From sequence record MW845759.1: a DNA stretch of 64,000 nucleotides, one strand, 5' to 3'. Under the pieces are notes generated by a model that was given only the letters and a program-made list of their open reading frames with translations, did not search any database and was not told where the DNA came from. The translations under genes were made by a program, and so were the position numbers. Position 1 is the first letter of the stretch, and every line of letters starts with the position of its first letter. Positions 6,728 through 27,989 of the stretch are shown piece after piece.

Positions 6728-7252
6728 TTACAGGTTCGGAACGATTTTATTCCATTCGATAGGTTGCTGTTTAATCACCGTTACCACCCCACGCGTTGGC
6801 GACCATACGGTTAAGTCCGGTTGGTTACGCACGTCGAAATGGAACCAGCTAATATCGGTTTCGAGGAAGTGAATGAACGGGAACTCATTCGGGTTCTGCT
6901 GAATGTAGGCACGCACAGCCTGCGGCGTATAACTGACGAACGTCAAGTCCATCGCCCCGCCGTATTTGTGCATGCTGTCAGACGCCGCATAAAGCTCGTG
7001 AGCGCGTTCTTTATAATTGCCACCCTTTGGTTGCTCTTGATTAATAAAGAACTGTAGCGTGCGTACAGAGCGCTGTGTCATGCCTTTCGCTGGTGAGTTG
7101 ACAATGATAGCACCGAATTTGTTACGCAGCTGCTGTAACGTGAGCATCACCAACGGGTTAATGATGTACGCCGCGTTCTTCCCCCGGCGTTTGATGATAT
7201 CCGGCGGCATTAACTCTTCGAGTTTAAACTGGTTGGGGTTGGGCTGAAACAT
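6728..7252 (-). CDS. Peptidase M15-family Zn metallopeptidase (possible peptidoglycan hydrolase)
   Basis: SMHKYGGAMD (H-x6-D) and WFHFD motifs typical of LAS/M15 peptidases. Confidence 0.75.
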   Translation of the reverse strand: MFQPNPNQFKLEELMPPDIIKRRGKNAAYIINPLVMLTLQQLRNKFGAIIVNSPAKGMTQRSVRTLQFFINQEQPKGGNYKERAHELYAASDSMHKYGGAMDLTFVSYTPQAVRAYIQQNPNEFPFIHFLETDISWFHFDVRNQPDLTVWSPTRGVVTVIKQQPIEWNKIVPNL

Positions 7253-7916
7253 TTGACTCTCCTGCGGTAGGGATAGGGTAGGTCAGAAATGCGCGTTTCA
7301 CGTTTAAGTAATGTACGTGCGCCTGCTGATGGGTTCGCACCATGGTCATGTCCTGCGGCGGAATACCCACCGATGGAAACTCACGGACGAACTCATAGTT
7401 GGCGTTCATGTTAAACGTGTATGCGTTCGGTTTAAAGTAAATGCATCCTTTGTTGTTGTCGATAAACGACGTCAAGCCAAAATGCTTCACTGCCAAATAA
7501 AAGGACTGACGTGTAACCCAATTTACCCCGAGCGCTTTCATGGCGTACAGGAACATGCGGTCCGCGAAGTTCTTGTCGATAAAGGCGTTCAGTTTTCCCA
7601 CCCCGTCGGAGGGGTAGTTGCCGATAATCGGAATCTTCTGGTAAAGCAGGTCGTGCAATGCGGCCGCGGGGCCGTAGTCACCTTCCGGTTTAAACAAAAA
7701 CTGGAGCTGTGTGGGTATTGATGCTAAATCGGTTACAAACCCTTTCGGGGCAACCAAATATAAAGGCATATCGGCTTTTAACCCGGTTTCCTTTAAAATG
7801 ACCTCGAGACGTGTCGGGTCGTCCTCAAACAGACCAGCTAAAGTAAAACCGAAGGTGTAGTCTTTCGTTAAGATAAACCACTGCTTATCAAAACGGCAAT
7901 ACTCGAACTTATCCAT
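7224..7916 (-). CDS. DUF1353-domain protein
   Basis: GFVTDLASIP, AAALHDLLY and ADRMFLYAM motifs characteristic of DUF1353. Confidence 0.8.
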   Translation of the reverse strand: MDKFEYCRFDKQWFILTKDYTFGFTLAGLFEDDPTRLEVILKETGLKADMPLYLVAPKGFVTDLASIPTQLQFLFKPEGDYGPAAALHDLLYQKIPIIGNYPSDGVGKLNAFIDKNFADRMFLYAMKALGVNWVTRQSFYLAVKHFGLTSFIDNNKGCIYFKPNAYTFNMNANYEFVREFPSVGIPPQDMTMVRTHQQAHVHYLNVKRAFLTYPIPTAGESNVSAQPQPV

Positions 7917-7946
7917 CTTGTTATCCTTCGTTTTACGTGGGGGTCA

Positions 7947-7982
7947 TAAAAAAAGAACAAAAGTGTGCCCCGAAGGGCACAC
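7947..7982 (-). terminator. Intrinsic terminator closing the radical SAM/Cys-repeat cluster
   Basis: gtgtgccc-cgaa-gggcacac (UUCG loop on minus strand) with A-run on its left, directly after the stop at 7985. Confidence 0.85.
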
Positions 7983-7984
7983 GC

Positions 7985-8641
7985 TTACAGCTCAGCGACA
8001 AACTTCTCTTTCAAACCTTTGAGCGTCGTGTAATCACTCTTCTCAGCGGCTGTCCGAGCAGTCTGTTTAAAGTCGGTCATCTTTTCATGCAGCCCATTGG
8101 TACGCGCAACAATGGCTTCGTTCAACGCTTTCAAATCATCCAGCGTGAATTCGAATTTCGCATTATTGGTATCGACCCAGTAACCCGGGTCTTGCTCTGT
8201 CGAAAGGTAACGACTGATCGCCGCTAACGCTTTCTCATCGGTTTGATAAACCCGACCGTTCAGTTCGAGTGGGGCGACCACTGCTTCACTGTACGCTTGG
8301 TTTACCCACGCAATGAGTTCGGTCAGTAACGCGACACACTTCCCGTGCGTCGAGATGCGCTCCGCCTGACGCTGGGCCAAATCAATCCCCAGCACATCAC
8401 TGATAAAGGTGTGTGCGGACTTAAGCGTGAACTTAATCTCCAGCGGAGACAAGCCCTGCGCTTTCAGTTGGGAAGACAGCTCTTCGTCTTTCATCCCGTC
8501 CAGCAAACGGTAATGTGCCAGACGAGACAGAGACGGGTTCCAACGCGAGTCACTTAAATGTCCATCCACGAACTGGCCGTGACGGTCAATCAGTTTCCCG
8601 CTGTTGAGAAAGCGATCTTTTATTTGGTCATTACTAAGCAT
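7985..8641 (-). CDS. DUF4376-like protein (tail-fibre-associated/chaperone candidate)
   Basis: C-terminal NGRVYQTDEKA...YWVDTNNAKFEFTLDDLKAL..AI pattern resembles DUF4376, which is often found beside tail fibre genes. Confidence 0.6.
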   Translation of the reverse strand: MLSNDQIKDRFLNSGKLIDRHGQFVDGHLSDSRWNPSLSRLAHYRLLDGMKDEELSSQLKAQGLSPLEIKFTLKSAHTFISDVLGIDLAQRQAERISTHGKCVALLTELIAWVNQAYSEAVVAPLELNGRVYQTDEKALAAISRYLSTEQDPGYWVDTNNAKFEFTLDDLKALNEAIVARTNGLHEKMTDFKQTARTAAEKSDYTTLKGLKEKFVAEL

Positions 8642-9183
8642 TCAGTTTTCCCCAGGATGCCGACGTCTTTCAGCAGACCGTAGTCGAGGAACGAGTAGTC
8701 CTTCGCCAAGTCATACTGCCAAACGAGGTTAGACACGCGCGATTCCACCGGCGTTTCTTCAGCAGTGTTGAACACCCCGATATGATCCCACAGCTCAAAG
8801 TAGTTGCACTGGTCTTTGTTGTCGCGCACCACTTTGATTTTGTTGTTCGGGAACGATTGCGCCAAGGCAATCAGCGAGTCAACCTGCTTGTTACGTTTCG
8901 CACGGAACAGCACAGTCAACTTGCTCGGCGGGGTATCCAGCATACGCTGCTCTAAGCCGGCGTTACGCAGTTCAGCGTTCGCCAGTGAGTTATGGCCGTT
9001 CTCCACACAGTCCAGCTCAATGTGCACGTTCAACGAGTGACGTACAACCAGCTTTTTCACTGTGTCGGTGTAGTGCTCTGCTTTACACAGGATGCTTACA
9101 TCGAACAGCTTATGCTTCGTCAGAAAGGCATCCAGCAGCGTGGTATCAAGCCGAGTAAAATTGTGAATCATCAATGACTGCAT
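8620..9183 (-). CDS. Hypothetical accessory protein of the radical SAM cluster
   Basis: Likely start MQSLMIHNF at 9183 (or 9171); overlaps both neighbours, suggesting translational coupling. Confidence 0.7.
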   Translation of the reverse strand: MQSLMIHNFTRLDTTLLDAFLTKHKLFDVSILCKAEHYTDTVKKLVVRHSLNVHIELDCVENGHNSLANAELRNAGLEQRMLDTPPSKLTVLFRAKRNKQVDSLIALAQSFPNNKIKVVRDNKDQCNYFELWDHIGVFNTAEETPVESRVSNLVWQYDLAKDYSFLDYGLLKDVGILGKTECLVMTK

Positions 9184-10492
9184 TAGGCTTTTCCTGTTTT
9201 GCATGAACGTGTGGTTGAACAGCCTCTGGTTTCGCGCCAGAGAGTTTTGGAAGTTTGTTTTCCTGCGAGGCTTTAACACGGCACTCGTAGCAGTTGCACG
9301 ACAACGGTTTGAACTGGTCGCCATAGGTACCAAAACGACGTTCCCACCATTGGGCAGTTAACAGCTTAGCGGTGGTCCAGCCGCACTGGCGACGTTCCGA
9401 GTGATACTGCTTACGCGCATCCTCTTCACCGTCACCATTCTCGTACGCTGCAGCTACGCAGGACGCACAGATGTGTTTGGCCGGGCAGCCCAGACAAGCA
9501 TCGGGGTACGACTGCCACTGGGTCTGGACTTCGTTCAGGAGCTTACCGCCGTCGGTGTTGACAATCTCACGACCCACGAGCTTCGCAATTGCCTGACGGG
9601 TGGTTACGGTGGACATGAAGCGGTTACAACCGTAGATGTTACGGTCAAAGCCGAGGCAGGTCATGTGAACCGTGGTACCACAGTGCGGTTTCAGACGTTC
9701 AGGGTCGTAACGAATCTGATCGTTATGCTGTAACATCTCACGCCATTCCGGAGCCCACATGTTATCGATGTTCATACCACGAGGGGTGATGTGCCCCATC
9801 TCAGCGGTCGGGTCTAAGTGCAGACCTTTACCAATCCAGTATTCCAGCACTTCAATCATCTGGTTAGAGATGCCGAGTGCCATATCACGTGGAATGATGT
9901 CTTCGAAAATCATGTTACCGTAAATAGTGCCGCCACCAGACTGGTCAATCAGCGACTTCATGGACGCCGCGTAATGCTTCAGCGTGTCATGGGTAAAGGT
10001 CGCTTTAATCCCGAGGTCGTTGATTTTCATCGACTTCAGGTAATGATAACCTTCCAGCGCTTTCTCGTAGGAACCTTTACGAGAGGTGGTGAAGATACGG
10101 TGACGGTCGTGGGTTTCCGGCAGACCATCGATTGACACGCCGATAGACAGTTTCGGATACCAGCGCTCAATGATTGAACGGTTTAACGGCTTATCAAAAA
10201 GCGTTCCGTTCGTGGAGATGGAGAACATGTATGGGCGGTTATCACGCGCCGCTAACATCTCTGCAGTTTCGAAGGCCGCAATCAGCAGCTTCGGTTGCAG
10301 GAACGGTTCCCCACCGATAATGTCGATAATCGCGCCGCCTACATTCGGCTTGCCGCGGTCACGGTCAAAACAGGCGTGGATGAAGTCAACCACGTCATCT
10401 ACACGGTTGTTACGCGGGAACTTGCGCTCGTAGCAATAATCGCAATCGAGGTTACACGACAAGTTCGTAACAATCTGATACGTTACGTCCAT
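9146..10492 (-). CDS. Radical SAM enzyme with SPASM-type domain; predicted peptide maturase
   Basis: CNLDCDYC, GGEP, STNGT, SIDG motifs; C-terminal C-x7-C-x9-C ... CxxC-x5-C-xx-C ... C; extra CNCYEC tail. Confidence 0.9.
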   Translation of the reverse strand: MDVTYQIVTNLSCNLDCDYCYERKFPRNNRVDDVVDFIHACFDRDRGKPNVGGAIIDIIGGEPFLQPKLLIAAFETAEMLAARDNRPYMFSISTNGTLFDKPLNRSIIERWYPKLSIGVSIDGLPETHDRHRIFTTSRKGSYEKALEGYHYLKSMKINDLGIKATFTHDTLKHYAASMKSLIDQSGGGTIYGNMIFEDIIPRDMALGISNQMIEVLEYWIGKGLHLDPTAEMGHITPRGMNIDNMWAPEWREMLQHNDQIRYDPERLKPHCGTTVHMTCLGFDRNIYGCNRFMSTVTTRQAIAKLVGREIVNTDGGKLLNEVQTQWQSYPDACLGCPAKHICASCVAAAYENGDGEEDARKQYHSERRQCGWTTAKLLTAQWWERRFGTYGDQFKPLSCNCYECRVKASQENKLPKLSGAKPEAVQPHVHAKQEKPNAVIDDSQFYSA

Positions 10493-10505: not shown

Positions 10506-11381
10506 TCAGGACTGTGGCAAATTTAGGTAGGTGTGCAGATACTTGTAAGCCTCTACACCGATGATTTGGGCCATGGCATTACAGCCTGAGTTGACGTAGA
10601 AGTCTACGTTCTCATTGTGCTTAATGTCACCGTTGGGTTCTACCAGTTTCAGCTGACCGCAAGCGTTACAGTTGGTGTGGTCGAAGAACTTCTCCAGACG
10701 GAACACCGTATTGATACCGTTAACGCTATTGAGATGCTGCATCTGTTCTTCAATACGCTTGTAGCCGTAAATGAAGTTCAGCACGTGGTCCTGATTGAGA
10801 GGTTTGTGCATCAGTTTATCAAACGTCAGGGTCATAGCACCCACACGTAAGTGATGCAGCGCAGCATGCAGGCGCATGGTGTCTTCAAACCAGCGCGGTT
10901 TGCTAACGTGTTCGCGGGTCAATACGCCCCACGTAACAACATTGTCCAGCGCGTGCATGACTTCAAACGCTTCGTGCGCCCCTTCTTCCACAAACGCCAT
11001 CAGACTGCGCTCACCGCCTTCAAAATGGTCGATGGAGACGATGATGCGGTCAAACGTTTTCAGGAAGTCGAGCTGCGAGAGTTTGAGTTTTCGGCCGTTG
11101 GTAAACAGCAGGTGTTTTGCGGAAGGCACTTGCTCACGTGCTTCGCCTACAAAGTCAACTAACTTCTGGTAGGCCAATAACGGTTCGCCGCCCGTCCACA
11201 GGAATTCCTCTACTTGAGGATTTTCTTTTATAATGTCCACCATTGCCTCTTTGTGTTTTGTTTTCGAAACATCACCCTTGGCCATGTGAGCTGCCCCTCC
11301 ACAGAAGGAGCAGTTCAGGTTGCACTTAGACGTCAGGGCAATGTCAATCATGGTAGCAGACGACTTAGGGGTATCGTGCAT
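10506..11381 (-). CDS. Second radical SAM enzyme (short C-terminal Cys motif)
   Basis: CNLNCSFC, TGGEPLL, FTNG, VSID motifs; C-terminal CNAC...C; likely start MHDTP at 11381. Confidence 0.88.
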   Translation of the reverse strand: MHDTPKSSATMIDIALTSKCNLNCSFCGGAAHMAKGDVSKTKHKEAMVDIIKENPQVEEFLWTGGEPLLAYQKLVDFVGEAREQVPSAKHLLFTNGRKLKLSQLDFLKTFDRIIVSIDHFEGGERSLMAFVEEGAHEAFEVMHALDNVVTWGVLTREHVSKPRWFEDTMRLHAALHHLRVGAMTLTFDKLMHKPLNQDHVLNFIYGYKRIEEQMQHLNSVNGINTVFRLEKFFDHTNCNACGQLKLVEPNGDIKHNENVDFYVNSGCNAMAQIIGVEAYKYLHTYLNLPQS

Positions 11382-12303
11382 CAGGGTTTTTGTTCCACAG
11401 ATTTTCCATGAACGCGAATAACGGGTCGGAGACACGAACGTCTTCACCCGGGACGATCAGTTTCGGGTCATGGTACGCTTTAAGAATAGCATCCAGCACC
11501 TTGTTGCGATCGTTTAAACGCAGCAGCTCATCCACCGTCACGGTCTGACGGGTAAAGGAACTGACCGCATTTTGCTCTTCGGCCGACAGCAGACCCGCTT
11601 CATTGACTTTACCGACCAAGAAGGTCAGCACACGATGTAAGTCCGCGGTAGTGTTAGGTTGCTCACCGTACTCATACTGCAACAGATAGTTGGTCCACGG
11701 CTTACGAATGCGTTTGGTAATCTCATGCGCATCGGTAATTGCGGTCCACTTCATATCACGGTGGTCCCATGTAAATTTATAGGAATACGCGAGCAGGTCG
11801 GCCAGACAGTCAATACCTAACTCTTCGTACCCTTCAACCGGGTAGTAACGCTCGAGGTTGAAATAGCCGTCATCAACGGTACCTTCTTCAACCAGCGTAT
11901 AATAGAACGGGAACGACGACGGGTATTCCCAGTTCCACTGACGCTGAATCATCGGTTTCATGCCGTGTTCTTTGAACGAGGCAAACACCATCTCCAGCGG
12001 CATGGAATAGTTCAGCACCGCATCCGTGAAGTAATACTTTTCATTGACGAGCTTACCGACGTACTCCGTCGTGCCGTCGAGGTTGTACAGAATTTTAATC
12101 CGTAACCCATCCGGCGTGGTAAACTCTTCACGCACTTCTGCATGATTTAAAATATCACGCGGACGCAGACGAGGAAATTCACCCGGGTTCATGCAAATCA
12201 AACGCAGGCGATCATTCACGTGGTCGTTTACCGCATCGGGCAGCCCAAGATGGATTGGGTAGTTAAAGTTGGTACGAAACGCCAAGTGTTCATTATTCTT
12301 CAC
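11365..12303 (-). CDS. Hypothetical accessory protein of the radical SAM cluster
   Basis: 312 aa, GTG start with RBS taaggag 10 nt after the preceding stop; aromatic-rich; no recognised motif. Confidence 0.75.
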   Translation of the reverse strand: MKNNEHLAFRTNFNYPIHLGLPDAVNDHVNDRLRLICMNPGEFPRLRPRDILNHAEVREEFTTPDGLRIKILYNLDGTTEYVGKLVNEKYYFTDAVLNYSMPLEMVFASFKEHGMKPMIQRQWNWEYPSSFPFYYTLVEEGTVDDGYFNLERYYPVEGYEELGIDCLADLLAYSYKFTWDHRDMKWTAITDAHEITKRIRKPWTNYLLQYEYGEQPNTTADLHRVLTFLVGKVNEAGLLSAEEQNAVSSFTRQTVTVDELLRLNDRNKVLDAILKAYHDPKLIVPGEDVRVSDPLFAFMENLWNKNPDARYP

Positions 12304-12313
12304 GGATAGCTCC

Positions 12314-12523
12314 TTACGATGGCCACGTTACCGCTTTAGTGCCACCTGATGCTGACCAGCTGCAGCTGCCGTTACAACGGTAGGCCCCAGCCGGAATATT
12401 GTTTAAACGGTTCGCGTTATTCACCGTCCCCCGCGTGGCGATATAGTTATTCGCAGACGCAGTCGTGATGTACCCTTCGAGACGGGCGATTTGTTGCGCA
12501 ACCTCGTTCAGTGAAACAGCCAT
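12314..12523 (-). CDS. Short paralog of the Cys-repeat proteins (2 Cys only)
   Basis: RBS taaggag; MAVSLNEV leader, NANRLNN, RCNGSCSWS. Confidence 0.8.
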   Translation of the reverse strand: MAVSLNEVAQQIARLEGYITTASANNYIATRGTVNNANRLNNIPAGAYRCNGSCSWSASGGTKAVTWPS

Positions 12524-12532
12524 AGCGACTCC

Positions 12533-12931
12533 TTACGGTCCTGAGCAACCAGAGCATCCCGTACAAGACGACGAACAGCTACCAGAGCAGCCGCCTGAAC
12601 AGCCTCCCGAACAACTTGTAGAGCACGTACCGGAACAGGTTCCCGTACAGTTACCCGAACAACCCCCAGCACAACCACCGGTGCAGTTAGACGAGCACGA
12701 ACCGCCGCACGTCCCTGAACAAGTGCCTGTACAACCGCCAGAACATGCAGAGCCGCATGACCAGCTACAAGTGCCGCCACAGTGGTAATAGTTGGCGTCT
12801 TGACCGGCTAATCGGTCGACGTTGTTTGAAGTTTTACCGCCGATGTACGCTTGAACCCCTGCTTCTGTTTTCAGTGCAGCGGACTCAATGTTGTTCATCT
12901 GGTTCTTTACTGCATTAAGTGATACAGCCAT
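12533..12931 (-). CDS. CXXX-repeat Cys-rich protein 2 (putative radical SAM substrate)
   Basis: RBS taaggag; 50-aa leader plus 82-aa core with 21 Cys in Gly/Ser/Thr-rich CXXX repeats. Confidence 0.88.
   Translation of the reverse strand: MAVSLNAVKNQMNNIESAALKTEAGVQAYIGGKTSNNVDRLAGQDANYYHCGGTCSWSCGSACSGGCTGTCSGTCGGSCSSNCTGGCAGGCSGNCTGTCSGTCSTSCSGGCSGGCSGSCSSSCTGCSGCSGP
12536..12781 (-). repeat. Coding CXXX tandem repeat (12-nt period)
   Basis: 18 CXXX units followed by CTG CSG CSGP. Confidence 0.9.
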
Positions 12932-12942
12932 GGTCGCTCTCC

Positions 12943-13329
12943 TTACATCGGACCAGAACAGGCCGAACAGCCCGTACAGGAACTAGAACAAGAGCCAGAG
13001 CACCCGTGACCACATCCGCCGGAGCACGATGAGGAACAAGCACTACCACAGCCACCCACGCAGGTGCCGGTACACGTGCCGGAGCAACTCCCGGAACACG
13101 TACCAGAACAACCACCGGAGCAGTTACCGGAACAACTCGAGCAACCATAGGAGCACCCAGACGAACATGTCCAGCTACAGCTACCGTTACAGCGAATGTC
13201 CCCGGGTGACATACCACCCAGATTGTTTGCGTTAAATGCTTTGGTTGCAACCTGATTGTCCACAGAAGGTCCTGTGGCCAAAGACAGTCTCGCAATTCGC
13301 GCATTAACGTCATTAAGTGAAACGGCCAT
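12943..13329 (-). CDS. CXXX-repeat Cys-rich protein 1 (putative radical SAM substrate)
   Basis: RBS aagga; 46-aa leader plus 82-aa core with 21 Cys. Confidence 0.88.
   Translation of the reverse strand: MAVSLNDVNARIARLSLATGPSVDNQVATKAFNANNLGGMSPGDIRCNGSCSWTCSSGCSYGCSSCSGNCSGGCSGTCSGSCSGTCTGTCVGGCGSACSSSCSGGCGHGCSGSCSSSCTGCSACSGPM
12946..13191 (-). repeat. Coding CXXX tandem repeat (12-nt period)
   Basis: CXXX units with one early CSS unit, ending CTG CSA CSGPM. Confidence 0.9.
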
Positions 13330-13383: not shown

Positions 13384-14583
13384 TTATCTGGTACCTGCAG
13401 CCGACTGGAGATCGTCGCGGGTAGTGAGGCTGTTGTTAACGTGAACAGCCGCTTGCACCACGCCACCGGTGTTTTTGTTGAGGTACTGGTCGTGTGGGTT
13501 AGCCGCGGATTTGTGTGCTGCGAGATCCGAGTTGGTGTTGGCCAACGCCTGCTCCAGAGCCGCGATGCGATTTTCGAGACCTTGGTTCGCTGAGCTCATG
13601 TTCGCAATCTGCTGTTTCAGGTTACTGATTTCCTGATTCGCTGCTGCAAGACCCTGAGTAAGGGTACCGAGCTGTTGCGAGAGCAGACCGACCTGCGTTT
13701 CCAGCACCAGAATCTCATCCATCAGCTCAGCAATCTGCAGCTGGGTTTTCTGGTAGTTCTGGTCGACGGTGTTCAGCTGGGTGTTCCACGTCCCAATCGA
13801 GCTAACCAGTGCGGCAATCTGCTGCGTTAAGTTAGTGTCGGTTGCACCCAGGGTGCCGATATCTTGCAGGACAGCGTTAATGCTACTCTGTACTGTTTGA
13901 ATCTGCGCCCGGACTTCGGCGGTGGAGTAAACGTCCAACTGGCCACGGGTAATGTTGTGCACGTTACCTTCAGCCGTACGGTGCTCTTCTAATGCTGACA
14001 GCATTTCTTGACGATACGCTTTGAGCATGTTCTGAATCTGCACCATTTCAGCAGACGCGCCGATACGGATAGCGTCGTTAAGCTTAGACAACAGCGTAAC
14101 AATATATTCAAAACCGAAGAAGTCGCCCATGTCACGAAATGCCGGTGCACCCGCAAACTCGTCAGGCACATCGCGCAGCTCAGCGAAGTTAATTGTGGGG
14201 TCATCTAAGTTCAGCGTATTGATACATTGAATGATGTTGTCCACGTTCGCGGCATACGGCCCACCAACAATCTGAGCCGACGCGGTAATGTCTGCTGGGA
14301 CTGTCGATTTAGTAATAACGATGGCTGTGGCAATCTCACGTCCACCGGCTTGTTTAGTCAGGGACGGGTGGAGCAGAATCACTTCGTAGTTGGTGCCCCG
14401 AACGAGTGGCTGATTAGGCGCATTCACCGGAGCCATTCGAAGCGTATCAACAAAGAACGGACCTGTCGGGAAAGCAAACGCTCGGTTAACAGTACCGGTA
14501 CCGAGTTTAATCGGATGCGATACGGCATTACTGAGGTTGGTTCCGAACAGGTCCAATGGGTATTGCATTGCTACCTTACTCAT
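13384..14583 (-). CDS. Putative short fibre/whisker protein with long coiled coil
   Basis: N-terminal YPLDLFG..N domain shared with the three large fibre proteins; roughly 130-residue Gln/Leu heptad region; H...NPH motifs. Confidence 0.7.
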   Translation of the reverse strand: MSKVAMQYPLDLFGTNLSNAVSHPIKLGTGTVNRAFAFPTGPFFVDTLRMAPVNAPNQPLVRGTNYEVILLHPSLTKQAGGREIATAIVITKSTVPADITASAQIVGGPYAANVDNIIQCINTLNLDDPTINFAELRDVPDEFAGAPAFRDMGDFFGFEYIVTLLSKLNDAIRIGASAEMVQIQNMLKAYRQEMLSALEEHRTAEGNVHNITRGQLDVYSTAEVRAQIQTVQSSINAVLQDIGTLGATDTNLTQQIAALVSSIGTWNTQLNTVDQNYQKTQLQIAELMDEILVLETQVGLLSQQLGTLTQGLAAANQEISNLKQQIANMSSANQGLENRIAALEQALANTNSDLAAHKSAANPHDQYLNKNTGGVVQAAVHVNNSLTTRDDLQSAAGTR

Positions 14584-14634: not shown

Positions 14635-14638
14635 TTAT

Positions 14639-17600
14639 TTACACGCTCAGGGTGGAATCATGAATCATAACATCAAGGACAGTTGCCGTTGTTGCATCAA
14701 AATAGATGTCAACGTACTTGCCGCCCGCGAATGCACGTTCTTCCGTCCAGAACATAACCGGAGCTTTCGCCCCGCCCGATTGACGCATTGCCAGAATATA
14801 GTCTTTCCCCGTAGGGACGACGATGGTCTGGCCGCCCACTGCATTAGTACCGGTCAACGTCGTTGGACTTGCAGGGTTAGGCAGTTTAACACCTGTCATC
14901 GCCGCATTGGATACCGCGAGTTTTGTCGTACCGTCTTGCACCAACTCGAATGCAATATAGCACGGCGAATTACCCGGGGCTTCCTTAACAACGAAGGCTA
15001 ACGCGTTGGGTTGATTTAACAGCGCACCTGTCAGTGTCAGGTTAGCGTTCCCCGACAGCGTCCCTTTGGAGACACCGTTAAGGTACACATCCACCGAATC
15101 ATCAACCTGCACGTTCAGCACCAACGATGAAGAGGTTGGCGTGAAACTGGTCTTTGTTGCCCATGCAGTTCCGGCGGCCAGTTTACTCTCCGGCAAGAGA
15201 GTAATTGCAGGCGAGGCTAATGGTGGACTATAGGCGCTAGCTCGAGTCCCAACATTCGGCCAAAGCTTCTCGGCATAGTTGGTCAGCAGCATCCACGGGA
15301 ACGCCGACGCTGGGAAAGTCAGGCGTTGGATGGCGTTGAAGTTACCGCCTAACTGGTTTGCTGTTTCCAGCGCCGCAGCTGTGCCGTAAGACTTCGTTAA
15401 ATCCGCACCCGGACGAGTGATGTTCCAGAACCGTGTAGCATTCTGAGACGTTGCCCCGTACCCGAACCGACAACTGCGTGCAAAGGTCGGCGCCGCCGTC
15501 ACCAAGTCCACTTCCGCGTATTTATACGTGGCTGTGTTTCTTAGCTGACTTAACGTTAACCCCTTCTTCGCCGCAATGATGGCGCGGATGTTGTCATCCC
15601 GCACACCGGTGGTTGGCAGTAACGCGTGTTCTACCGCGATATACAGCTTGTTACCGCGCCGTTCAGCATACACGTGCGCATACCACTTACTCCATGCCAG
15701 CAAGTCCGTGGTGTCCGCATCCAACGTAGTGATTAAACGGGAGGATGCTTGGCGGTAGTTCTCTTTGAGCTGAATCAGGCCGGACAGGTTAACGTGTGAC
15801 TCAATCGAGTTGCCGATAGCCAAACATAACGTCTGCTCTACATTAGCCGCAGTGTCTTCCTTCTTCAATGCTGCGAGCACCACCGCAACACCGTCGTTGT
15901 CACCGTCGTTAGAAGTGACGACCGTATTGAACACATAGTCGCCCACCAATTCGTCCGAGATAAAGCCCACGAACGTTGCGGTGTTTAACGTACATTCAAC
16001 AACGTCGTCCGCTGCCACGTATCTCCATGCCACTAACTCTGACTCGTTCGCAGGTTGCGCGACGGTAGAGTTGTTGTGGCTGAAACGGTACCAGCTATTA
16101 TAGATGTCTTCGAACGATGGGAAAGCAAACGAGTCTACCGTCCCTAAGTTTTCCATGTTCGAGTACAACGTATCCGGCGCCGCCGCACTTGGCAGGTAAC
16201 CGTGTGCGTAGCGGTTATCGGCATGACTCAACAGTGCACCAACGCGCCCCAGTCGTTTAACGCGACTGATTTTCGCATCTGTGATTGCATTGCTGGTCGT
16301 CGTGGCATAACCAATATACAGCCGGGAAGCGGTGTCCGGCAGCTGGGTTTTCGACACTAGATACTCAGCCACTCCAGATGCATTTAACTGCACGTGGAAA
16401 TAGAACGTTGCATCTTGGTAGTCCGTAGGGAATAGCGTTTTGAAATCGAACGTCGCCGCAGGGACAAGGTGGTCTTCCATCTTCGCAAAGAACGGAACCG
16501 CTTGCGTGATGTACAGAATCATCCCTTCTGCGACTTGCGGGCCAAAGAGTATTGTGGGGCGCCCGCCGGTTTCAAACGCAATACCTTTCCCGCTGTAAAC
16601 CGTCCCCCCGAGATAAACTCCGAGCATTACAAAACCAATTTTTGCGATCTCATCTGTTTCCTGAAGATACACATAGTCGATTTCATTATTAGACGGGTTA
16701 AACGAAATACGCGTACCTGTCCATGTTGTCAAATCTTGAGAGATTTTCAACAGGTAACTCAAGTCGGTGCTAGAGCTACTGGTATTCACACGACATAGCG
16801 TTCTTGTCCTTAATAACCAGCCGTCGGAACGCTTAATCAAACGCATCTGGCTCATCTCTGCCAAATCATTGAGCGTGACCGCAGACACCCTGAATTTCTC
16901 TTCCTTCCACACCTCGATACCACCGAGCATCGACAGCGAAATAATTCCATTGTCAAACGTCATCGGGATACGGTAGAAATAAGTGCTGTTATCAAACCCA
17001 CCGGCCGTCGCGTTCGGGGTCAGAATACAAGTTTGCAGCACGCAGAGGTTTTGTCCTCCGAAGTCAAAGATACTCAGCCAAGCGATTCGCAGCGTAGGAT
17101 CAATAGCCAACCAGCCCGGAATTTTCGCGTCTAAGAAGTTTTCAATAGCTGACCACTGCTCAGCACTGATAGTAACCCTCTCGTTGGTGATGGTGGTGGT
17201 GCCTGCGATATTTCGATACGCACGACTTTCTGCCTTTCTAAACGAAGCACCGTTGAGATAGGACTGACTACCGTTATAGACTTGTCCCAGGCGACAAATC
17301 GCTTCGTAGTCATTTTGCGACACGACCTCACGATCATTAGACGGCCCCCAACCCACATAATCCGGCACGCCGTAGGTAGTGTCCGTGTCGTACGCAATGC
17401 TCATACACGACCCGGTACTACGTTGACGAAGAAGCATTTTCTTGGCAGTGCCGCCCAAAGCCGCCATCCCGCGCATTCTAAGAATGTACGGCGAAGCGTA
17501 TGGTCCAAGCACATTCACACTGTTTCCAATTGAGTTGGTCCAATCGGCATTCCAGCGGGCGCTTTCAAACGCGTCAGCATTTGGTAAGCGGAAACGCACC

Positions 17601-20323
17601 AAAAAGTCTTCTGCATCTGAGTTGCCGATACCAGTGACCCTATCTCCCTGAACGAACAGGCACATGGTGTACCCGTAGAAAAGATTGTTCGAGGTTTGAT
17701 CGTATTTCCCTTTCGGGAAGGTCAATCCGGTTTCATCAACACACAACGGGAAGAAATCGTCGTCGAGCGTGGCCGTTTTCGCGGTGAGATCGATAACATA
17801 AGACACCGTCCACTGAGGATCGCTATTTCGAATACCCTGCGCCTGCAACGAAGAACGGGCATGCAAACGAACACGAATTTTATTGCCTTTTGCTGCAGCA
17901 TAAATGTTTCTGCGGCTAAAGCTGATCATATTACGCGAAGTCCATTTCGCGGCCCCTTCTGGCGTGATGTACCAAAAGTTTGTCGTGTTAGGGTCAGTGG
18001 AGTTGGCACCATACGTTGAAAAACGCGCAGCATCGCCGGCGGGGTACTTCCCAGTTAGCGGCACTTTGGACATCAGCAGGTCGGAAGTTTTCCCGACTAG
18101 ACTTTCATCCAACGTCCAAATACAGGTATAAAAGTCTTGGGGGACCAAGTACATTTTAAGCAGGCACACTTTCCCCTCGGTTAACACCAACCGGTCTTCA
18201 TTGGTGTTAAAGTACGAAGGGGTAATTGGGTCGACTGTTCCGCCATTAAGCGCTTCCAAGGTCACGCGCGAGACACGGGTGTGTTTCGCCATGTTCATGG
18301 TGCCGTCAAACATAACCAAATAGTATTTGTTATCGGTCCCTTGGAAAATACCGCATTCATCACCAATGACAGTGACCGTTTTGAACTTCACGTTCGGGGC
18401 GATAGCTTTTAGCCCCACGGGCACATACTCTACGGTGGTTGGAATCGGATTGGAAACTGCGCCTGTTTCACTCACATCCGCTGTCCAATACAACACCATC
18501 TCGGAGCCGGCATACCCGCTCGTGGCATTACGAAGCACATAGAACTTACCGTTCTCTTCCCGTCCGATGTTTGCCCGAAGTGCGGCTTCCATTTGTTGAG
18601 ACGAGCCGTCGTAACGTCCGGCAGTAGGGATAGGCAGAAAGCCACTGTCTCCGTAATACGTCCCGCTGGCCACCCACGACGGTAACAGGTTGTTGGCTTT
18701 GTCTTCTGCCCCATCGATATCCAGTTTCAACTGGTAACCGAGTTTAGAGACCGCCGCCCGTTGTGTCGTGTAGTCAATGCCTGCCGCCAGATACGCCAAG
18801 CCTGACAGGATTGGAGACGCCGTTGGGACGTTCTGCAAGTCTGCTGCAACGTGGGTGTGGACTTTCAGCGCCTTAGTGGTTAACTGGTCACGGAACACCT
18901 GCGTCACGGGCTTGTCAGCCGGTGCTGTGTTGTTGACCTTATCCAGACCGAACGACAGCGCCGTCAGGTTAATGGTTTGGGTCGAACCGAAGGCTGCGTT
19001 GTTGATTTTGAAAGTCTCATCAACGTAGTTATTCAGTTTCAACAGCAGGTCGTTCACCCCCTTCTGCGACAGCGCGTAGTTCGGTGCAATAACCTCTACA
19101 CTGTCTGTCAAACGGAACAACCCTTCTACGGTATTCGTCGCAGCCGGGGTTTGAGCCGTCATGTTCAGTGGGGACTGCGTTGAGCCATTACCGCCCATCA
19201 ATACTGTCGACGTGGACTTGAAGCTTGGTTGAGCATTCGAGTTCAGTGGGGCATAGAGGTACAGGTTAATGGACTCCGGGGTAATTAAGAAAGCGCCGTT
19301 GTAAATCGGACGGACATCTTTCGCCCCTGCAGCATTACCTTTGGACGGCACGAACAGTTCATCGTAACCTGCACGGGAGGACACCCCTACCCCGCGCTGG
19401 TTGTTGTCACTGTCTGCCGCCAGCTCAATGACGGCTTCTGCACCGGTCAACAGGATTTTGCCTGCAGTAAACCGCAGAGCAGACTTCCCGTCTTGCGTGG
19501 CGTACATCAGCTCATCGTTATTGATAGCACGGAACCGACCGAAGACCTGACCCATGGTATCTTCGAGCAGCCCATCCACAATACGCTGTGAGATTTTGTG
19601 CTCGACCATAATCGCCACTAACTCAGCAAGCGTCTTACTGAACGCTTTCACCGCGTTGGTCGCCGCATCCCCAGCCGCTAACGCCCCGATTTGCGCCGGG
19701 GTGTATTTGTGCTGATGAGGCGTTTTATGGTGCTGTAACAGTTTATCCGCATACAGCTTTTGGGCTGCACGAGACAGGGCGGTTAAGGCGGTATTAATCT
19801 CGGTGTCGAGTTGCCCGGCCTTCGCTTCAATCTTCAGACGGATACCATCAATCGATTTGGCCACCTCATCACGCTGTAGCGCTTCAGCAAGCGTAGCAGG
19901 TGGGTCAATCGGGTCAATGGTTATTGGATAACGCATCAACGATTTCCAGTCGATGTTGCGCGGTTCTGTCAGTTCCGGATTAACTAAGAAGATGCCAATG
20001 TCCGATTCAGGAACCGAATAAGACGAGCCGAGAACCTGAGCTTTATAGGTAATCTCGGTTTTGGTCAGTAGCATTATCCCGCCGAAAAGCTGAGCGTTCG
20101 CGGCGTGAGCACCCTCTGAGTAATACAACGCGAGGTAATAATCGATACCTTCGAATAACAGATTCCCCGCTGTGTCCTTAACCTCTAAGCCGTTACGAAA
20201 GAAGGGTGCCTCGAGAGGCACCACTAAATTGAAACGGTTAGGATAAGTGGACGACTTGAGGGAACCTTCCGCGATGTTATCAGGACTTTCGCCCGTCAAA
20301 TCTTCGGGATAATGTTTTCTCAT
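14639..20323 (-). CDS. Putative long tail fibre/receptor-binding protein (1894 aa)
   Basis: YPEDLTG N-terminus; AT...G..L fibre repeats; DKVNNTAPADKPV motif; distal lectin/jelly-roll-like segments (SNDGDNDG, VDDSVDVYLNG). Confidence 0.75.
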   Translation of the reverse strand: MRKHYPEDLTGESPDNIAEGSLKSSTYPNRFNLVVPLEAPFFRNGLEVKDTAGNLLFEGIDYYLALYYSEGAHAANAQLFGGIMLLTKTEITYKAQVLGSSYSVPESDIGIFLVNPELTEPRNIDWKSLMRYPITIDPIDPPATLAEALQRDEVAKSIDGIRLKIEAKAGQLDTEINTALTALSRAAQKLYADKLLQHHKTPHQHKYTPAQIGALAAGDAATNAVKAFSKTLAELVAIMVEHKISQRIVDGLLEDTMGQVFGRFRAINNDELMYATQDGKSALRFTAGKILLTGAEAVIELAADSDNNQRGVGVSSRAGYDELFVPSKGNAAGAKDVRPIYNGAFLITPESINLYLYAPLNSNAQPSFKSTSTVLMGGNGSTQSPLNMTAQTPAATNTVEGLFRLTDSVEVIAPNYALSQKGVNDLLLKLNNYVDETFKINNAAFGSTQTINLTALSFGLDKVNNTAPADKPVTQVFRDQLTTKALKVHTHVAADLQNVPTASPILSGLAYLAAGIDYTTQRAAVSKLGYQLKLDIDGAEDKANNLLPSWVASGTYYGDSGFLPIPTAGRYDGSSQQMEAALRANIGREENGKFYVLRNATSGYAGSEMVLYWTADVSETGAVSNPIPTTVEYVPVGLKAIAPNVKFKTVTVIGDECGIFQGTDNKYYLVMFDGTMNMAKHTRVSRVTLEALNGGTVDPITPSYFNTNEDRLVLTEGKVCLLKMYLVPQDFYTCIWTLDESLVGKTSDLLMSKVPLTGKYPAGDAARFSTYGANSTDPNTTNFWYITPEGAAKWTSRNMISFSRRNIYAAAKGNKIRVRLHARSSLQAQGIRNSDPQWTVSYVIDLTAKTATLDDDFFPLCVDETGLTFPKGKYDQTSNNLFYGYTMCLFVQGDRVTGIGNSDAEDFLVRFRLPNADAFESARWNADWTNSIGNSVNVLGPYASPYILRMRGMAALGGTAKKMLLRQRSTGSCMSIAYDTDTTYGVPDYVGWGPSNDREVVSQNDYEAICRLGQVYNGSQSYLNGASFRKAESRAYRNIAGTTTITNERVTISAEQWSAIENFLDAKIPGWLAIDPTLRIAWLSIFDFGGQNLCVLQTCILTPNATAGGFDNSTYFYRIPMTFDNGIISLSMLGGIEVWKEEKFRVSAVTLNDLAEMSQMRLIKRSDGWLLRTRTLCRVNTSSSSTDLSYLLKISQDLTTWTGTRISFNPSNNEIDYVYLQETDEIAKIGFVMLGVYLGGTVYSGKGIAFETGGRPTILFGPQVAEGMILYITQAVPFFAKMEDHLVPAATFDFKTLFPTDYQDATFYFHVQLNASGVAEYLVSKTQLPDTASRLYIGYATTTSNAITDAKISRVKRLGRVGALLSHADNRYAHGYLPSAAAPDTLYSNMENLGTVDSFAFPSFEDIYNSWYRFSHNNSTVAQPANESELVAWRYVAADDVVECTLNTATFVGFISDELVGDYVFNTVVTSNDGDNDGVAVVLAALKKEDTAANVEQTLCLAIGNSIESHVNLSGLIQLKENYRQASSRLITTLDADTTDLLAWSKWYAHVYAERRGNKLYIAVEHALLPTTGVRDDNIRAIIAAKKGLTLSQLRNTATYKYAEVDLVTAAPTFARSCRFGYGATSQNATRFWNITRPGADLTKSYGTAAALETANQLGGNFNAIQRLTFPASAFPWMLLTNYAEKLWPNVGTRASAYSPPLASPAITLLPESKLAAGTAWATKTSFTPTSSSLVLNVQVDDSVDVYLNGVSKGTLSGNANLTLTGALLNQPNALAFVVKEAPGNSPCYIAFELVQDGTTKLAVSNAAMTGVKLPNPASPTTLTGTNAVGGQTIVVPTGKDYILAMRQSGGAKAPVMFWTEERAFAGGKYVDIYFDATTATVLDVMIHDSTLSV

Positions 20324-20326
20324 TAC

Positions 20327-23300
20327 TTATTCCTTTTCAAGATTTAGCTGCTTAACCACGAAGTCCCAGTTACGCTGGGTCAAGTTCCATGGGTTCTGCA
20401 TTGCAATCATTGGGATTTTACCGAACTCGTACGCGTACCAATCCGCCACGTTTGTTTCGAGTGTCTTGGTCGTGTTGTCGTTGTACGTGATGGTAAACTT
20501 CGCCTTCACAAAACACGTTAACGCGCCGGCTGTTGGTTCAGTGGTTACGGTGAAGTAACCTTTAAAGTTAGCACTCGGCACATAATTGATAGTTGCCGTA
20601 GCGTTACCCACTGCACCCGCTTGGTTGGACTTCGCAACCTGTTGGCCATCTACCCACGCACTCAGTACACCCTGACCCGCAATATTCACGGATACGGTTT
20701 TGGCGTTGGTCAATAGTCCCGGTTCGATATGCGTTGCCGCATAACCCCGGCGATTAAGGTTTGCCAATCCGATGGCAGTCCCTGCGTCGGTTCCTGGGTT
20801 CAGGAAATCGTCCGCCGGTACCGGGGTGACACCAAACGTCGACTCACGTGAACCTACTTGCCACAGCCCGTGAGGAACGGTGTACGTCGCGGTATCACGC
20901 AGAATGTTCGTCGTCTCTTCGGTGAGTATCACCTGAGTGGCAATATCCGCGTCTACCATTTCCGCCCCTAAGAAGAACCCAACACGTCCGCGCTGAAGTC
21001 CGTTCTTTTTCGCCGCATACGCCGACAGCTCAGAGCCACGGATATACGACTTGATAAGGCCAGTGTGGTAGTTCAGACGCGTCAGGTATTCCGTTGGGAT
21101 GTTACACTCGAAGATAGACCCCATGATGCGGTAGCCTGTTTTGCCGGTTGAGGAATATCCCACGTACGGCCCTTCGAAGAAACGCGAAATGTCCTGACTG
21201 AACACCAACGAACAGAAGCGGTGTGCTTCAGTACGGGTAGACTCACCCACGCCACCAATCATGATATTCAAGCGATTCTCCGCCGGAATATAACGATATC
21301 GGATTGCAATCACCCGTGGCTTTTTAATTGACACGCTATCCACGTGGGTCGGGAAGGCAAAGTCAGCAGCGACCGCAACATCTTCTTCACGAGTAAACGG
21401 TACCAGATTCGTGAGGGCGATATTAACGAACGGCTGAGCAACTGGCTGCGGGTTGACCTCATTAACGAACGCGATGGACGCCGTGCCCGTCGCAGCGGAA
21501 TCAATAGCAAACAAAGACAACACTTCATGTTTACCGTTGATTGCACTGGCAACGAACTCGATAACCCCGGATTCATTAGCCATGAAAGAACCGTCGTACG
21601 TGACCCGGCGTTTTGCCTGAGGGTTCGCCATGTTCTTCCAACGGAACGGGGATTGTCCCTTCACACCTACCCACAGACGTAGCGGTGCAGCCGCTGCAGC
21701 ACCTTCTGCGACAATCAGTGTACCTTGCGTACGTAAAGTCATCCCAGCAGCATCAGAGAACAGCGCGACACTCGGCGTGGAGGTAACGGCTTTATCAGCC
21801 ACCCCGTACGGTTCAGTAATCTCCAAGCCCGGCACTTTCACATCAGCAGGACTGTAGTCGCTCGCTGTTGTATCAATACCGCCGTGAGCACGCTGGTCAG
21901 CAATATGCTCTTGCAACTCACGGAACTGACCGAAGTCAATCACTTGGTTAAACTGAATCGGCCCGCCTGAAGTCACGACTGCCGTCGCGTTAGTATCAAC
22001 ATAGCCCAGATAGAGCATCTCGGTGTTCAATGAGTCGCTCGGTACTGGCGCCCCTACCGCCTGGAATTTACCCAATGTTACGTTCCCGTAAATAAAGAAA
22101 CGCATATTCGCAGTTGGGAAGTTGGTGGCAATGGTGCCAATGCGGGTTGCGGCTGAACTGGTGTATACCGGGGTGGTGTCGTCCATGATGTCAAACGCCA
22201 TAGACGCCGGTTTGGTAGTGTCTTCGCACAACGACATAATAGCAATCGCATGCACACCCGGCAGTAACTCAATCTCCACATTCGGATCGGTCGCTGCTTC
22301 CACAACCGGGTTTTCATCTACCCAGATAGACACCTTACCTGCAGAACGCACACGGATTTTGATGATGTCATCTGTAAAGCGTAAACGCACCTTCGAGGCC
22401 AACTTAAGACCTGCTGCACCTAAGCGGTTGTTCGCCATCGAAACAGCAACCGCTTGCGGCAGTGGGTTAGTCGGCTGAGTGGTATGTACCACGCCGGCAC
22501 TCCAGTTGTTCTCGATACCGCACGCGGTGTAATACCACGTTCCGCTCGGAACCGCTGCAAGGTTAACCACACCGTCAAACGTCCCTTCTGCCGAATCTAA
22601 CGCGCGGGCTACGAAATAACGGTATGCAGTGGTAGGTGTCAGGTTCCAGCCGGATACGTTAAAGGTGACCGACTCCACCGAGGTGAACTCTAAGGTGTCT
22701 TTGTACATCACACCGAAGAAACGTTTGTTGATATCCACCAAACGGTCGTTCAACGCCTTCAGTACCGCTGGCGCAACAGCCTGACCATCTTCCACTTCGG
22801 AAAGTTGGGAGGCCACCTTAACCGTACCGTACGCCATACGCGTGGCTTGCCCGATTTGCAGCATTGACCAATCGTGCTTGTGGTCTTTGGCTACTAAGGC
22901 ATCCGTACGCGCTTTCTGCGGCGTTGAGAGCGGTTTATTCAAGTCAGCAGTGTTATCTACTGAACCCAAATTTAAATCGCTCTTATCGAGGGTAATGCCG
23001 GCACCGGACATCGGCTTGTTATTAATCAGCAGTGTCTTCGGCACCATGTCATTGAAACCGTCGTTGTACGGCTTACCGGAGGCAGGCGTTGCCGCCACCC
23101 CATCGGCCACCGCGCCCGGACCGGTTACGAGCTTTACCTTACCCGGCAACGCCTTGGTCGCTTTCGGGATATTCAGCTCAGCTTCAAGTGGCGCAGACGG
23201 TGTACCTTTCCCTTTGAACGTCATGTTCGTTGAGGAGATATTAATCTGCACGTTCTCCGGGTCACCGTTGGCGTCTTTCGACTGGTACTTCTTCACGGTA

Positions 23301-24349: not shown

Positions 24350-24359
24350 TACGAATCCT

Positions 24360-27300: not shown

Positions 27301-27989
27301 TTCGGCAGGTAATATTCAGCCTCGAAAACATAGTTCTCAAGGGCCGCGGCTTTCCCATTGCCAAAATCAAAGCGCCAAATGGTGTCCAGTGCAAAGTTGT
27401 GACGGCCTGTGGCGGCATCAAAGGTAACACGGGCTGCGCTATAGTCAGACGGTGGGTTGGCAGAGACGCTCGTTAATAACGGGTCTTTCTGAGGCTGCTT
27501 GTATTTCAGACCGTCGGCTAATACACCAAGGGCATCCATCAGCTCGCGCTCACCGCACCAGTTATCCCAGTCAAACTGAAGATCGACCGGTGGGAAATAC
27601 GGGTCACCTACAACGTCTTCCCAATACTTATCGGTGAAGACGGTGTTCCCGGCAATAAAAGCAGTTTTTTGTGCTGCCGTAGCAGCATTGATTCCTACGG
27701 GATGGTAGGTCACTGTTAATGCACGAGAAACGGTATCGTCAATGACTAAAATCGCACCGTGAATACGACGGGCAGTACGCAGCACCCCGGTGGCATACGG
27801 CAACACTTTATAATAGTGCACCTGCTCTTGGAGCTCCTTCGTACCATCGAAAAGCTTGAACTCAAGGTCGGTATAGAACGGACCGTGGGTTGGGAAAATA
27901 AGTCGCGGGCCAGTAGCGGGCAGAGTTTGTGCTTCTTTTGTCTGCACGTTTTCCGCTACAGTCCCATGTGGATCAAACACGACAGACAT
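24360..27989 (-). CDS. Putative long tail fibre (1209 aa)
   Basis: FDPHG..EN N-terminus; HILRKDNPH, ATTTVKGLVKL and HVDNPNAHNV motifs. Confidence 0.75.
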   Translation of the reverse strand: MSVVFDPHGTVAENVQTKEAQTLPATGPRLIFPTHGPFYTDLEFKLFDGTKELQEQVHYYKVLPYATGVLRTARRIHGAILVIDDTVSRALTVTYHPVGINAATAAQKTAFIAGNTVFTDKYWEDVVGDPYFPPVDLQFDWDNWCGERELMDALGVLADGLKYKQPQKDPLLTSVSANPPSDYSAARVTFDAATGRHNFALDTIWRFDFGNGKAAALENYVFEAEYYLPKAALNTDVTKEAFNSLVDNSWASPFVCICLRHINGAFRLQLMVSVSSVWQYYDIASVAFPVANFTKPFRVRIARSEPNQSVEVQISNDAGVLGKMKVEHNNPPTAIANTYAQYNVAARLAGPTDLRTTVQFRNTGYMQILQCPGFTAGITEDIKGLLTVWYKLLRESFDQSPAREHILRKDNPHNEEAGWIKALVRNGISADAVRIYNRTLPQLTTYVNGLAPTAANLATKVRRETTARLLRGTIVGVEGLTQHTQGSDASNIRILSKFDKLQSWLIARNDNISVTAAQYIDIKAGTGVLRLYNDGRGLTWNGSKLLTHDTVGPYIPQGGAAAAGFVGVSTATITLTGKGIGSSPFVATWKEPSAADLSALAMRMVTDDFGTSSALAATPALITKLAANFTGKLLKGTANINGVKLAGSITLSKSMYGLSEVVDISDMLMPMSTAMETLIADYENDPNHTHPASMFGIVNATTTVKGLVKLGGLENDATIALDGREVLAQSARLDAVDTESSDTLSPAVINILRYGNSGTGLIEGVETEDYMVSLPASSYYCGGKRTVAAKSYNLVDLFPGAYTNKTFYVYVDAVADGTAVYSISGTRRQENDTLTEIGTVVTDGDSIVRAVINNVTRLGGFREFTEHVDNPNAHNVTTVDKDSVGLSSIRNIPAAVGNYKVGFTNGLRDWQSVFNTATWTQAGQTLMLTNYGAGQVNATGLVHSQKQAGYTLRGTVATDTTADNGGWLGWLLSYRQVKTEEHTLSIIANPDAGGWVTDSGQPTIHAVVIDAGKSSQIIIPGVTARSATQKLSQLVVKPIVIARVGNVFTVQPGAVSSLDAVTEKFVIDFDAMTVVVSNSLGQSKTTQLEPLMRAKGIATDFFLGSAMVGVLGLYKSKSTYTFQIHPTVNPAGMYSTLGSLIDNVSPLSKVRVARGDLSSATLTQAQIQTEVGQPAFLTADSRGITYLPENCSYYSNKKAYAMLMVRSTK

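Follow-up and report, generated by a model that had tools for sequence, protein, structure and literature searches.

Cysteine-rich proteins encoded with radical-SAM enzymes beside the tail-fibre genes of a jumbo Erwinia phage

The stretch of DNA analysed here (the window, 64,000 nucleotides of record MW845759.1) is 100% identical over positions 9000-15000 to Erwinia phage pEa_SNUABM_38 (MW845759.1, 224 kb). On the minus strand, at 12314-13329, lie three paralogous open reading frames (ORFs) of 128, 132 and 69 amino acids, called paralogs 1, 2 and 3 below. They are real genes of a recognisable protein family, and they form part of a conserved cassette with two genes for radical S-adenosylmethionine (SAM) enzymes. 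Since the same module is fused to tail-fibre proteins in other phages, the three proteins resemble fibre parts that enzymes have cross-linked more than a peptide that is released. The explanation that best covers the evidence as a whole, in which our confidence is slightly better than even, is that these are late genes of the tail-fibre operon whose cysteine-rich, fibre-associated products are matured by enzymes and keep their N-terminal module. The same 6-kb part of the window is 96% identical in phages Derbicus and EarlPhillipIV, 81% in Phobos and 77% in Cronobacter phage CR5; together with pEa_SNUABM_38 these phages belong to the genus Derbicusvirus and are SPN3US-like jumbo myoviruses.

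Three paralogs with a common N-terminus

All three paralogs match the family phrog_6085 of the PHROG database, with expectation values (E) from 4e-24 to 4.5e-43, the last for paralog 1, so their likeness reflects homology and not chance. An earlier note, made by reading the letters of this DNA, had described a shared N-terminus, and the translations agree with it. The proteins begin with MAVSLNDV, MAVSLNAV and MAVSLNEV, respectively. Residues 5, 8, 12 and 15 are hydrophobic in each of them, and this 3-4-3 spacing is that of an amphipathic helix, within which paralogs 1 and 3 carry IARL and paralog 2 carries MNNIE. The motif that the note had written as N(A/V)xxLx(G/N) is present as NANNLGG, NVDRLAG and NANRLNN, and its first Asn lies 14 residues ahead of the first Cys of each protein (Cys47, Cys51 and Cys50). 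Each gene is preceded by a strong Shine-Dalgarno sequence, AAGGAAG in the case of paralog 1. Before paralog 2, paralog 3 and the gene for a 312-residue protein that follows them, the sequence is TAAGGAG and overlaps the preceding stop codon (12932-12948, 12524-12538 and 12304-12318, respectively), with spacers of 9-11 nucleotides; these overlaps suggest coupled translation from paralog 1 through to the 312-residue protein.

Downstream of the shared N-terminus, paralogs 1 and 2 consist of a core built of Cys, Ser, Gly and Thr, with 21 Cys residues each and without a single Lys, Arg, Asp or Glu, and hence without tryptic sites. Cys makes up 26% of the core. Successive Cys residues are four positions apart in 17 cases in paralog 1 and in 18 cases in paralog 2, and three positions apart in 3 and 2 cases. 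Against TIGR04114, the model of CXXX-repeat radical-SAM targets (PF27846), the two proteins score 20.0 and 23.8 bits, respectively, with a cutoff of 20, and by this measure they are classed as phage-type members of that target family. Paralog 3 has a single CxxxC only and falls outside it. The description of all three proteins as Cys-rich is accordingly right for paralogs 1 and 2, but not for paralog 3, which has one CxxxC box and no repeat. In 15 of the 15 jumbo-phage relatives checked (at loci including L013-L027) the Cys count of paralog 1 is 21, and that of paralog 2 ranges from 19 to 23. The core after the box is 71-77 residues long in these relatives, apart from one of 85 residues, and a length so fixed in spite of a low-complexity repeat points to a defined structure. 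A sequence search of the PDB with the Cys-rich family found no related structure, the best match being nematocyst Cys-rich domains at the chance level (E 0.39).

The N-terminal module in other phages

In the clade to which the window proteins belong, the passage from the N-terminal part to the core follows the pattern (N/D)xxx(L/F)x(G/N)x5YxC..CSW. Among 52 distinct junctions, numbered back from the first Cys, Leu or Phe stands at -10 in 94%, Gly or Asn at -8 in 94%, Asn or Asp at -14 in 81% and Tyr at -2 in 87%. The stretch ahead of the box varies from 46 to 290 residues. In the longer homologues, the segment that looks like a leader in the window is internal: positions 5-8 onward of phrog_6085 match them from residue 68-96. 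The additional N-terminal parts of these proteins match tail-fibre families, notably phrog_5073 (5.7e-7 and 2.8e-6), whose N-domain is found in the homologues P0029, P0067 and P0012. The window paralogs themselves match phrog_6085 only in the PHROG search.

A P2-like phage provides the clearest case of continuity with a fibre protein. Its 401-residue protein (L025, 6275-7480) has collagen-like runs, matches tail-fibre or minor-tail PHROGs at 2e-9 and 2.5e-10, and ends in the same junction and CXXX core; the gene follows baseplate genes and is itself followed by genes for a radical-SAM protein, a phrog_8030-like protein, a radical-SAM/SPASM protein and the tail sheath. The junction and core of this protein are nearly identical to those of the 206-residue P0029 of a T7-like phage (L031, 1599-2219). 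The two sequences become alike precisely at the N-x-x-x-L-x-G motif, ahead of which their N-termini are unrelated. Mosaicism of this kind is typical of exchangeable fibre tips. In four T7-like phages (L004, L005, L007 and L031) the order is a fibre adaptor (PF03906), a 118-residue collagen-like mini-fibre, the Cys-rich gene and the radical-SAM genes, and the mini-fibre and the Cys-rich protein after it have a common N-domain. One of them (L004, 11330-13336) encodes both radical-SAM enzymes of the cassette as a single fused protein of 668 residues, which argues that the two work together. In a lambda-like siphovirus (L008) the Cys-rich gene comes directly after gpJ and is followed by a radical-SAM gene. 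Placement in a tail module is thus seen in the window and in T7-like, lambda-like and P2-like phages, the exception being a lineage of distant large phages (L006 and L034).

A tblastn search with the short paralog found 64 phage records, all of SPN3US-like phages, from Erwinia, Salmonella, Cronobacter, Escherichia and Proteus. In CR5, SPN3US, L006 and L010, two long paralogs and one short paralog form a triad in the same order. The short form of the third paralog is conserved among relatives, and in two loci its slot is occupied by a protein with a globular C-terminal extension (P0134 of 210 residues, L009 8001-8633; P0140 of 147 residues, L010 8001-8444); the extension of about 80-140 non-repetitive residues follows the same N-terminal module. 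In the L006/L034 lineage, genes for a phrog_8030 homologue (26% identity, 6e-29) and two radical-SAM proteins come after the triad, and among the neighbours of these cassettes (L006 9620-13567; L034 9001-12947) are an Acb2/Tad1-like hairpin protein, a GIY-YIG protein and a Cpn60 chaperonin. Wider searches revealed three kinds of CXXX protein, namely bacterial proteins with a twin-arginine leader, a phage clade with an N-domain of about 107 residues, and the clade that has the junction of the window. A podovirus whose portal is of the P22 type encodes a member of the second kind (L028) within its structural module, beside a true TIGR04115 enzyme. A scan of genome contigs with P0029 found no prophage copy.

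The earlier note had also taken NAxxLxG to be a motif common in phage tail fibres. A profile of the leader and box (69 positions) was searched against 1.84 billion representative sequences and gave 26 hits, mostly short paralogs. One hit, P0151, lacks a Cys-rich part: it is a collagen-like protein of 297 residues in which a 21-residue repeat occurs six times, the copies aligning to profile positions 23-48 with 46% identity over 26 residues (E 4e-5). This value is the sum of weak repeats of 7-14 bits each, and an unrelated repeat protein, P0150, reached E 1e-5 by the same summing, so the likeness of the leader motif to a general fibre repeat is suggestive only. The idea of a common motif is favoured weakly, by one match in the whole library, but the unrelated protein scores as well. 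With P0151 as the query, tblastn against phage genomes returned collagen-like matches only. A homology search limited to residues 1-55 of paralog 1 gave no match, probably for technical reasons; whole-protein searches did match.

Taken together, the gene fusions and the gene order in four phage body plans support a reading of the N-terminal region as a fibre-type structural module, and not as the disposable leader of a ribosomally synthesised and post-translationally modified peptide (RiPP).

Gene neighbourhood and virion data

The features of the region are collected in the table. The four proteins encoded upstream of the paralogs (399, 1894, 1340 and 1209 residues) have a common N-terminal domain, phrog_2163, and mass spectrometry has identified their SPN3US equivalents, gp167-170, as tail, baseplate or fibre proteins of the virion. 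The three paralogs of the window are thus found within a tail-fibre module. The 399-residue protein, which directly precedes the Cys-rich trio, is the smallest of the four; it is nearly all coiled coil and has no obvious distal domain. The suggestion of one Cys-rich paralog for each long fibre finds no support in these data, as four neighbours and not three share the fibre N-domain, paralog 3 has no Cys-rich portion, and triads are also known at a distance from fibre genes.

Features of the fibre and radical-SAM region in the window
Feature	Coordinates	Strand	Description
Three long fibre/baseplate-periphery paralogs (1894, 1340 and 1209 aa)	14639..27989	-	Equivalents of SPN3US gp168-170
Coiled-coil fibre-like protein (399 aa)	13384..14583	-	Directly upstream of paralog 1; orthologue of SPN3US gp167 (45% identity)
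Cys-rich paralog 1 (128 aa)	12943..13329	-	Helix, NANNLGG, CxxxCSW box at Cys47, CXXX core; TIGR04114 and phrog_6085
Cys-rich paralog 2 (132 aa)	12533..12931	-	Helix, NVDRLAG...YYH, box at Cys51, 21 Cys; TIGR04114 and phrog_6085
Short paralog 3 (69 aa)	12314..12523	-	Same leader and one CxxxCSW box, without repeats; phrog_6085
Orphan protein (312 aa; phrog_8030)	11365..12303	-	Accompanies the cassette in distant phages; matches nothing in Pfam or the PDB, no peptidase signature
Shorter radical-SAM protein (313 aa)	10506..11447	-	CNLNCSFC motif; annotated start gives 10506-11381
Radical-SAM/SPASM maturase (448 aa)	9146..10492	-	CX3CX2C motif at residues 13-20
Downstream genes (phrog_7988; DUF4376; DUF1353 with PHROG label 'tail assembly chaperone')	7224..9333	-	Probably in the same transcription unit

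Beside the Cys-rich genes the window has a gene for a radical-SAM/SPASM maturase, an arrangement shared with ranthipeptide and sactipeptide RiPP systems. This 448-residue enzyme best matches PapB (1.4e-32) and TIGR04115, the model of CXXX-repeat maturases (6e-32), with scores well below the two cutoffs, and, in the PDB, CteB. Its radical-SAM motif starts at residue 13, so that it has no N-terminal RiPP recognition element (RRE), and a PqqD-like RRE was not hit in any cassette protein. The shorter radical-SAM protein has an HxsC-type enzyme as its top NCBIfam match, far under the cutoff. The 312-residue orphan matches nothing in NCBIfam and is not similar to the TIGR04119 protein; nine phrog_8030 relatives were scanned against Pfam without a credible hit, a PDB sequence search with the family found no match, and an AlphaFold2 model from the single sequence, with a predicted local distance difference test (pLDDT) score of 35.6, was too poor for a fold search. 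Families of peptidases or transporters were not found in any gene from 5536 to 14583. There were no twin-arginine translocation (Tat) genes among the window cassette, and no leader of the RRxFxK type in the phage-type proteins. As no strong minus-strand terminator-like site was found between 14583 and 7982, the downstream genes are probably in the same transcription unit. Near the start of the window, at 100-5485 on the plus strand, five consecutive ORFs of 295-509 residues have as counterparts a row of genes in Derbicus (gp146-150) labelled 'putative virion structural protein'; these ORFs may be part of a large paralog array like the head family B of SPN3US.

The Cys-rich genes have largely escaped annotation, and as a rule it is the short paralog alone that the records carry. 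In the GenBank record of pEa_SNUABM_38 the short paralog is the only one annotated, and both long genes are missing. Derbicus gp161 and gp162 are wrong-frame calls across the two long genes, and the CR5 record has the short paralog together with an ORF on the opposite strand. SPN3US carries all three genes (130, 134 and 68 residues), one of them called in the wrong frame and two uncalled. The long genes are miscalled or uncalled at 12533-13329 of the window and at three further loci (L001 19509-20314, L003 5178-6207 and L002 6548-7353). Virion proteomics run against the current annotations of pEa_SNUABM_38, Derbicus, CR5 and SPN3US is therefore blind to the long Cys-rich proteins. The SPN3US virion protein lists contain gp167-170 and none of gp163-166. 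The absence of the latter agrees with a non-structural role of the enzymes; on the Cys-rich proteins the lists are uninformative, because the ORFs were unannotated or in the wrong frame.

Competing explanations and related systems

A mechanism can be proposed for the enzyme-matured, fibre-associated proteins. The first 46-50 residues, comprising the amphipathic helix, one fibre-repeat-like unit that ends in the conserved Tyr, and the CxxxCSW box, would be retained. This module would dock or oligomerise the protein on the fibre apparatus, and it is probably also the handle recognised by the maturases; the double role is proposed because, in the characterised Crp system described below, the N-terminal domain of CrpA is needed for engagement of CrpC and is shared by CrpB. 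The SPASM enzyme, which probably falls in the thioether-forming clade of peptide maturases, would, aided by the second radical-SAM protein and the 312-residue orphan, link the 21 Cys residues to neighbouring residues via thioethers, by analogy with PapB, CteB, QhpD and CrpC. The charge-free core of about 75 residues would thereby become a covalently stapled, protease-resistant rod of fixed length, and the matured proteins may be incorporated into the baseplate fibres, or attached to them, as a brace or a distal part. The earlier note had supposed trimers, possibly heterotrimers, that would display the Cys-rich tip on the virion. Paralog 3 would supply the same N-terminal module without the rod, or, in some relatives, with a globular tip. 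A more specific version can be imagined, in which a 1:1:1 hetero-oligomer of the two long paralogs and paralog 3, joined via their N-terminal helices, caps the coiled-coil stalk of the gp167-like protein of 399 residues, the two length-matched 21-Cys cores being thioether-stapled into a new covalent fibrous fold that replaces the collagen-like triple helix or globular tip of the paralogous mini-fibres. We regard this version as quite unlikely; if it were true, a RiPP-like structural element cross-linked by enzymes would be described for the first time in a virion, and it would span myo-, sipho- and podoviruses.

Several observations weigh against matured fibre parts with a retained module. The cassette of the L006/L034 lineage is not beside recognisable fibre genes. 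Since some fibres lose their C-terminal domains once assembled, fusion alone is no proof that the module is retained. A resemblance of the leader to the neighbouring long fibres of this phage was not borne out: with the leader profile, no long-fibre match better than E 0.16 was obtained among all ORFs of 35 loci, and a loose regular expression for the motif gave 8 hits in all large ORFs of the window (18.9 thousand residues), none of them convincing in the long fibres. The AlphaFold2 monomer of paralog 2, modelled with 24 relatives, has a pLDDT of 49.5, with low-confidence helices at 5-21 and 23-34 and the remainder unstructured, and is too poor for a fold search. The cores of both long paralogs have no Asp or Glu and hence no CX3D motif, so that the acceptor used by PapB, the nearest characterised enzyme type, is absent. 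Lastly, the 448-residue enzyme scores 111.5 bits against TIGR04115 (cutoff 350), as a member of a related clade and not as an equivalog; the control enzymes from Duncaniella (L030) and phage L028 reached 617 and 385 bits, respectively.

The question raised by the N-terminal region is whether it is a fibre-type segment, as the earlier note held, or a leader in the classical sense. In a classical RiPP pathway, these 46-50 residues would guide the enzymes and be cleaved off, and the cross-linked core would be released at lysis, for example with an antimicrobial or host-modulating role. The maturase does fall within the clade of PapB, CXXX-repeat and SCIFF peptide maturases, the precursors are small and lie side by side as in RiPP clusters, and a conserved motif stands at a fixed distance ahead of the core, as in many leaders. 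However, the operon contains no recognisable peptidase, exporter or RRE, the supposed leader is an internal segment of larger fibre proteins in other phages, and the genes occupy tail-fibre slots in four phage types. Moreover, the short paralog is conserved though it has no core to release, and the bacterial relatives, with a twin-arginine signal and dedicated TatA/TatC, are equipped for export of a folded protein. Release of a peptide is for these reasons distinctly improbable, and the view of the earlier note is supported in this respect.

Tail-fibre assembly proteins are encoded just downstream of the fibre genes in many phages, and the Cys-rich proteins could likewise be chaperones or scaffolds for the folding or joining of the long fibres that are absent from the finished particle. 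Their genes lie directly downstream of the fibres and upstream of proteins labelled 'tail assembly chaperone' in PHROG, and the annotated cassette genes of SPN3US (gp163-166) are not in its virion list. That list, however, is silent on the Cys-rich proteins, which were outside the annotation; a module that forms the C-terminal end of a collagen-like fibre and is exchanged between phages resembles a distal tip and not a chaperone, and the heavy investment in covalent maturation, together with the fixed core length, suggests a durable product. We consider an assembly factor fairly unlikely. A purely intracellular function, in which the CXXX array would take up metals or Fe-S clusters, or act as a redox buffer to the radical-SAM enzymes of the phage, with no structural role, would account for the Cys density, and the authors of the CrpA study suggest that CrpA may bind metal (PMC13692751). 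Yet it would leave the fibre-domain fusion, the placement in tail modules and the conserved N-terminal module unexplained, and the cassette enzymes fall in peptide-modifying clades; we find this explanation very improbable.

Bacterial pathways for natural products and cofactors are the known setting of radical-SAM peptide maturases. Here the Cys-rich module moves among unrelated phages together with its enzymes. If its products are indeed enzyme-matured fibre parts, phages use radical-SAM chemistry to harden part of their host-recognition apparatus. This would add a post-translational layer to tail-fibre biology, extend RiPP-like modification to virions and assign a function to the CXXX-repeat family.

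Literature searches on the CXXX system, on radical SAM with tail fibres and on phage RiPPs found no description of this arrangement. The bacterial CXXX-repeat system (TIGR04114, TIGR04115, TIGR04119 and TIGR04116; Bacteroidota and others) is defined bioinformatically, and the literature search found no experimental paper on it. Its likeness to the window lies in the Cys at each fourth residue with small residues between, and in the adjoining SPASM radical-SAM enzyme of the same clade. The bacterial targets, however, have a twin-arginine leader and are encoded in an operon with TatA/TatC, TIGR04119 and TIGR04116, none of which is found in the window, whereas the window has the fibre-type N-terminal module, a second radical-SAM enzyme and phrog_8030. 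In the Duncaniella operon (L030, 2590-6380) the TIGR04115 enzyme is encoded with TIGR04119, TIGR04116, TatA and TatC, and a twin-arginine leader is found on the precursor; export of the bacterial product in a folded, modified form is therefore probable.

PapA/PapB (freyrasin, a ranthipeptide) and SCIFF/CteB are the best-scoring characterised families for the 448-residue protein, and a repeated four-residue spacing of Cys is common to them and the window. PapB links Cys to Asp in CX3D motifs. The window cores differ in having no Asp or Glu, and the products of PapB and CteB are short released peptides, whereas the present module belongs to fibre proteins or is associated with them. Modular tail fibres, such as those with an adaptor of the T7 gp17 type and distal proteins, or with collagen-like segments, resemble the present system in gene position, in the N-domain and in the exchanged C-terminal module; we know of no fibre module reported to need radical-SAM maturation.

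HxsA/HxsB/HxsC is a bacterial antiphage effector system in which a radical-SAM pair, one SPASM enzyme and one shorter enzyme, acts on a protein with a short-period repeat (PMC13128918). HxsC is the top NCBIfam hit of the 313-residue enzyme and HxsB is among the hits of the 448-residue enzyme, all far under the cutoffs; the repeat is HXS and not CXXX, and the effector is exported to the periplasm (PMC13128918). In Methanococcus voltae, the SPASM enzyme CrpC installs thioethers in a whole Cys-rich protein, CrpA, whose N-terminal region is needed for engagement of the enzyme and is shared by the paralog CrpB (PMC13692751). The Crp system differs from the window in its enzyme family (TIGR04463, matched by the window enzyme at only 1.4e-13), its C-X-X-Q/D acceptors, and its cellular setting with no fibre context. 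Both Crp and QhpC/QhpD nevertheless pair a SPASM enzyme with a whole Cys-rich substrate, as proposed here, and the layout of Crp is the same as that of the window triad.

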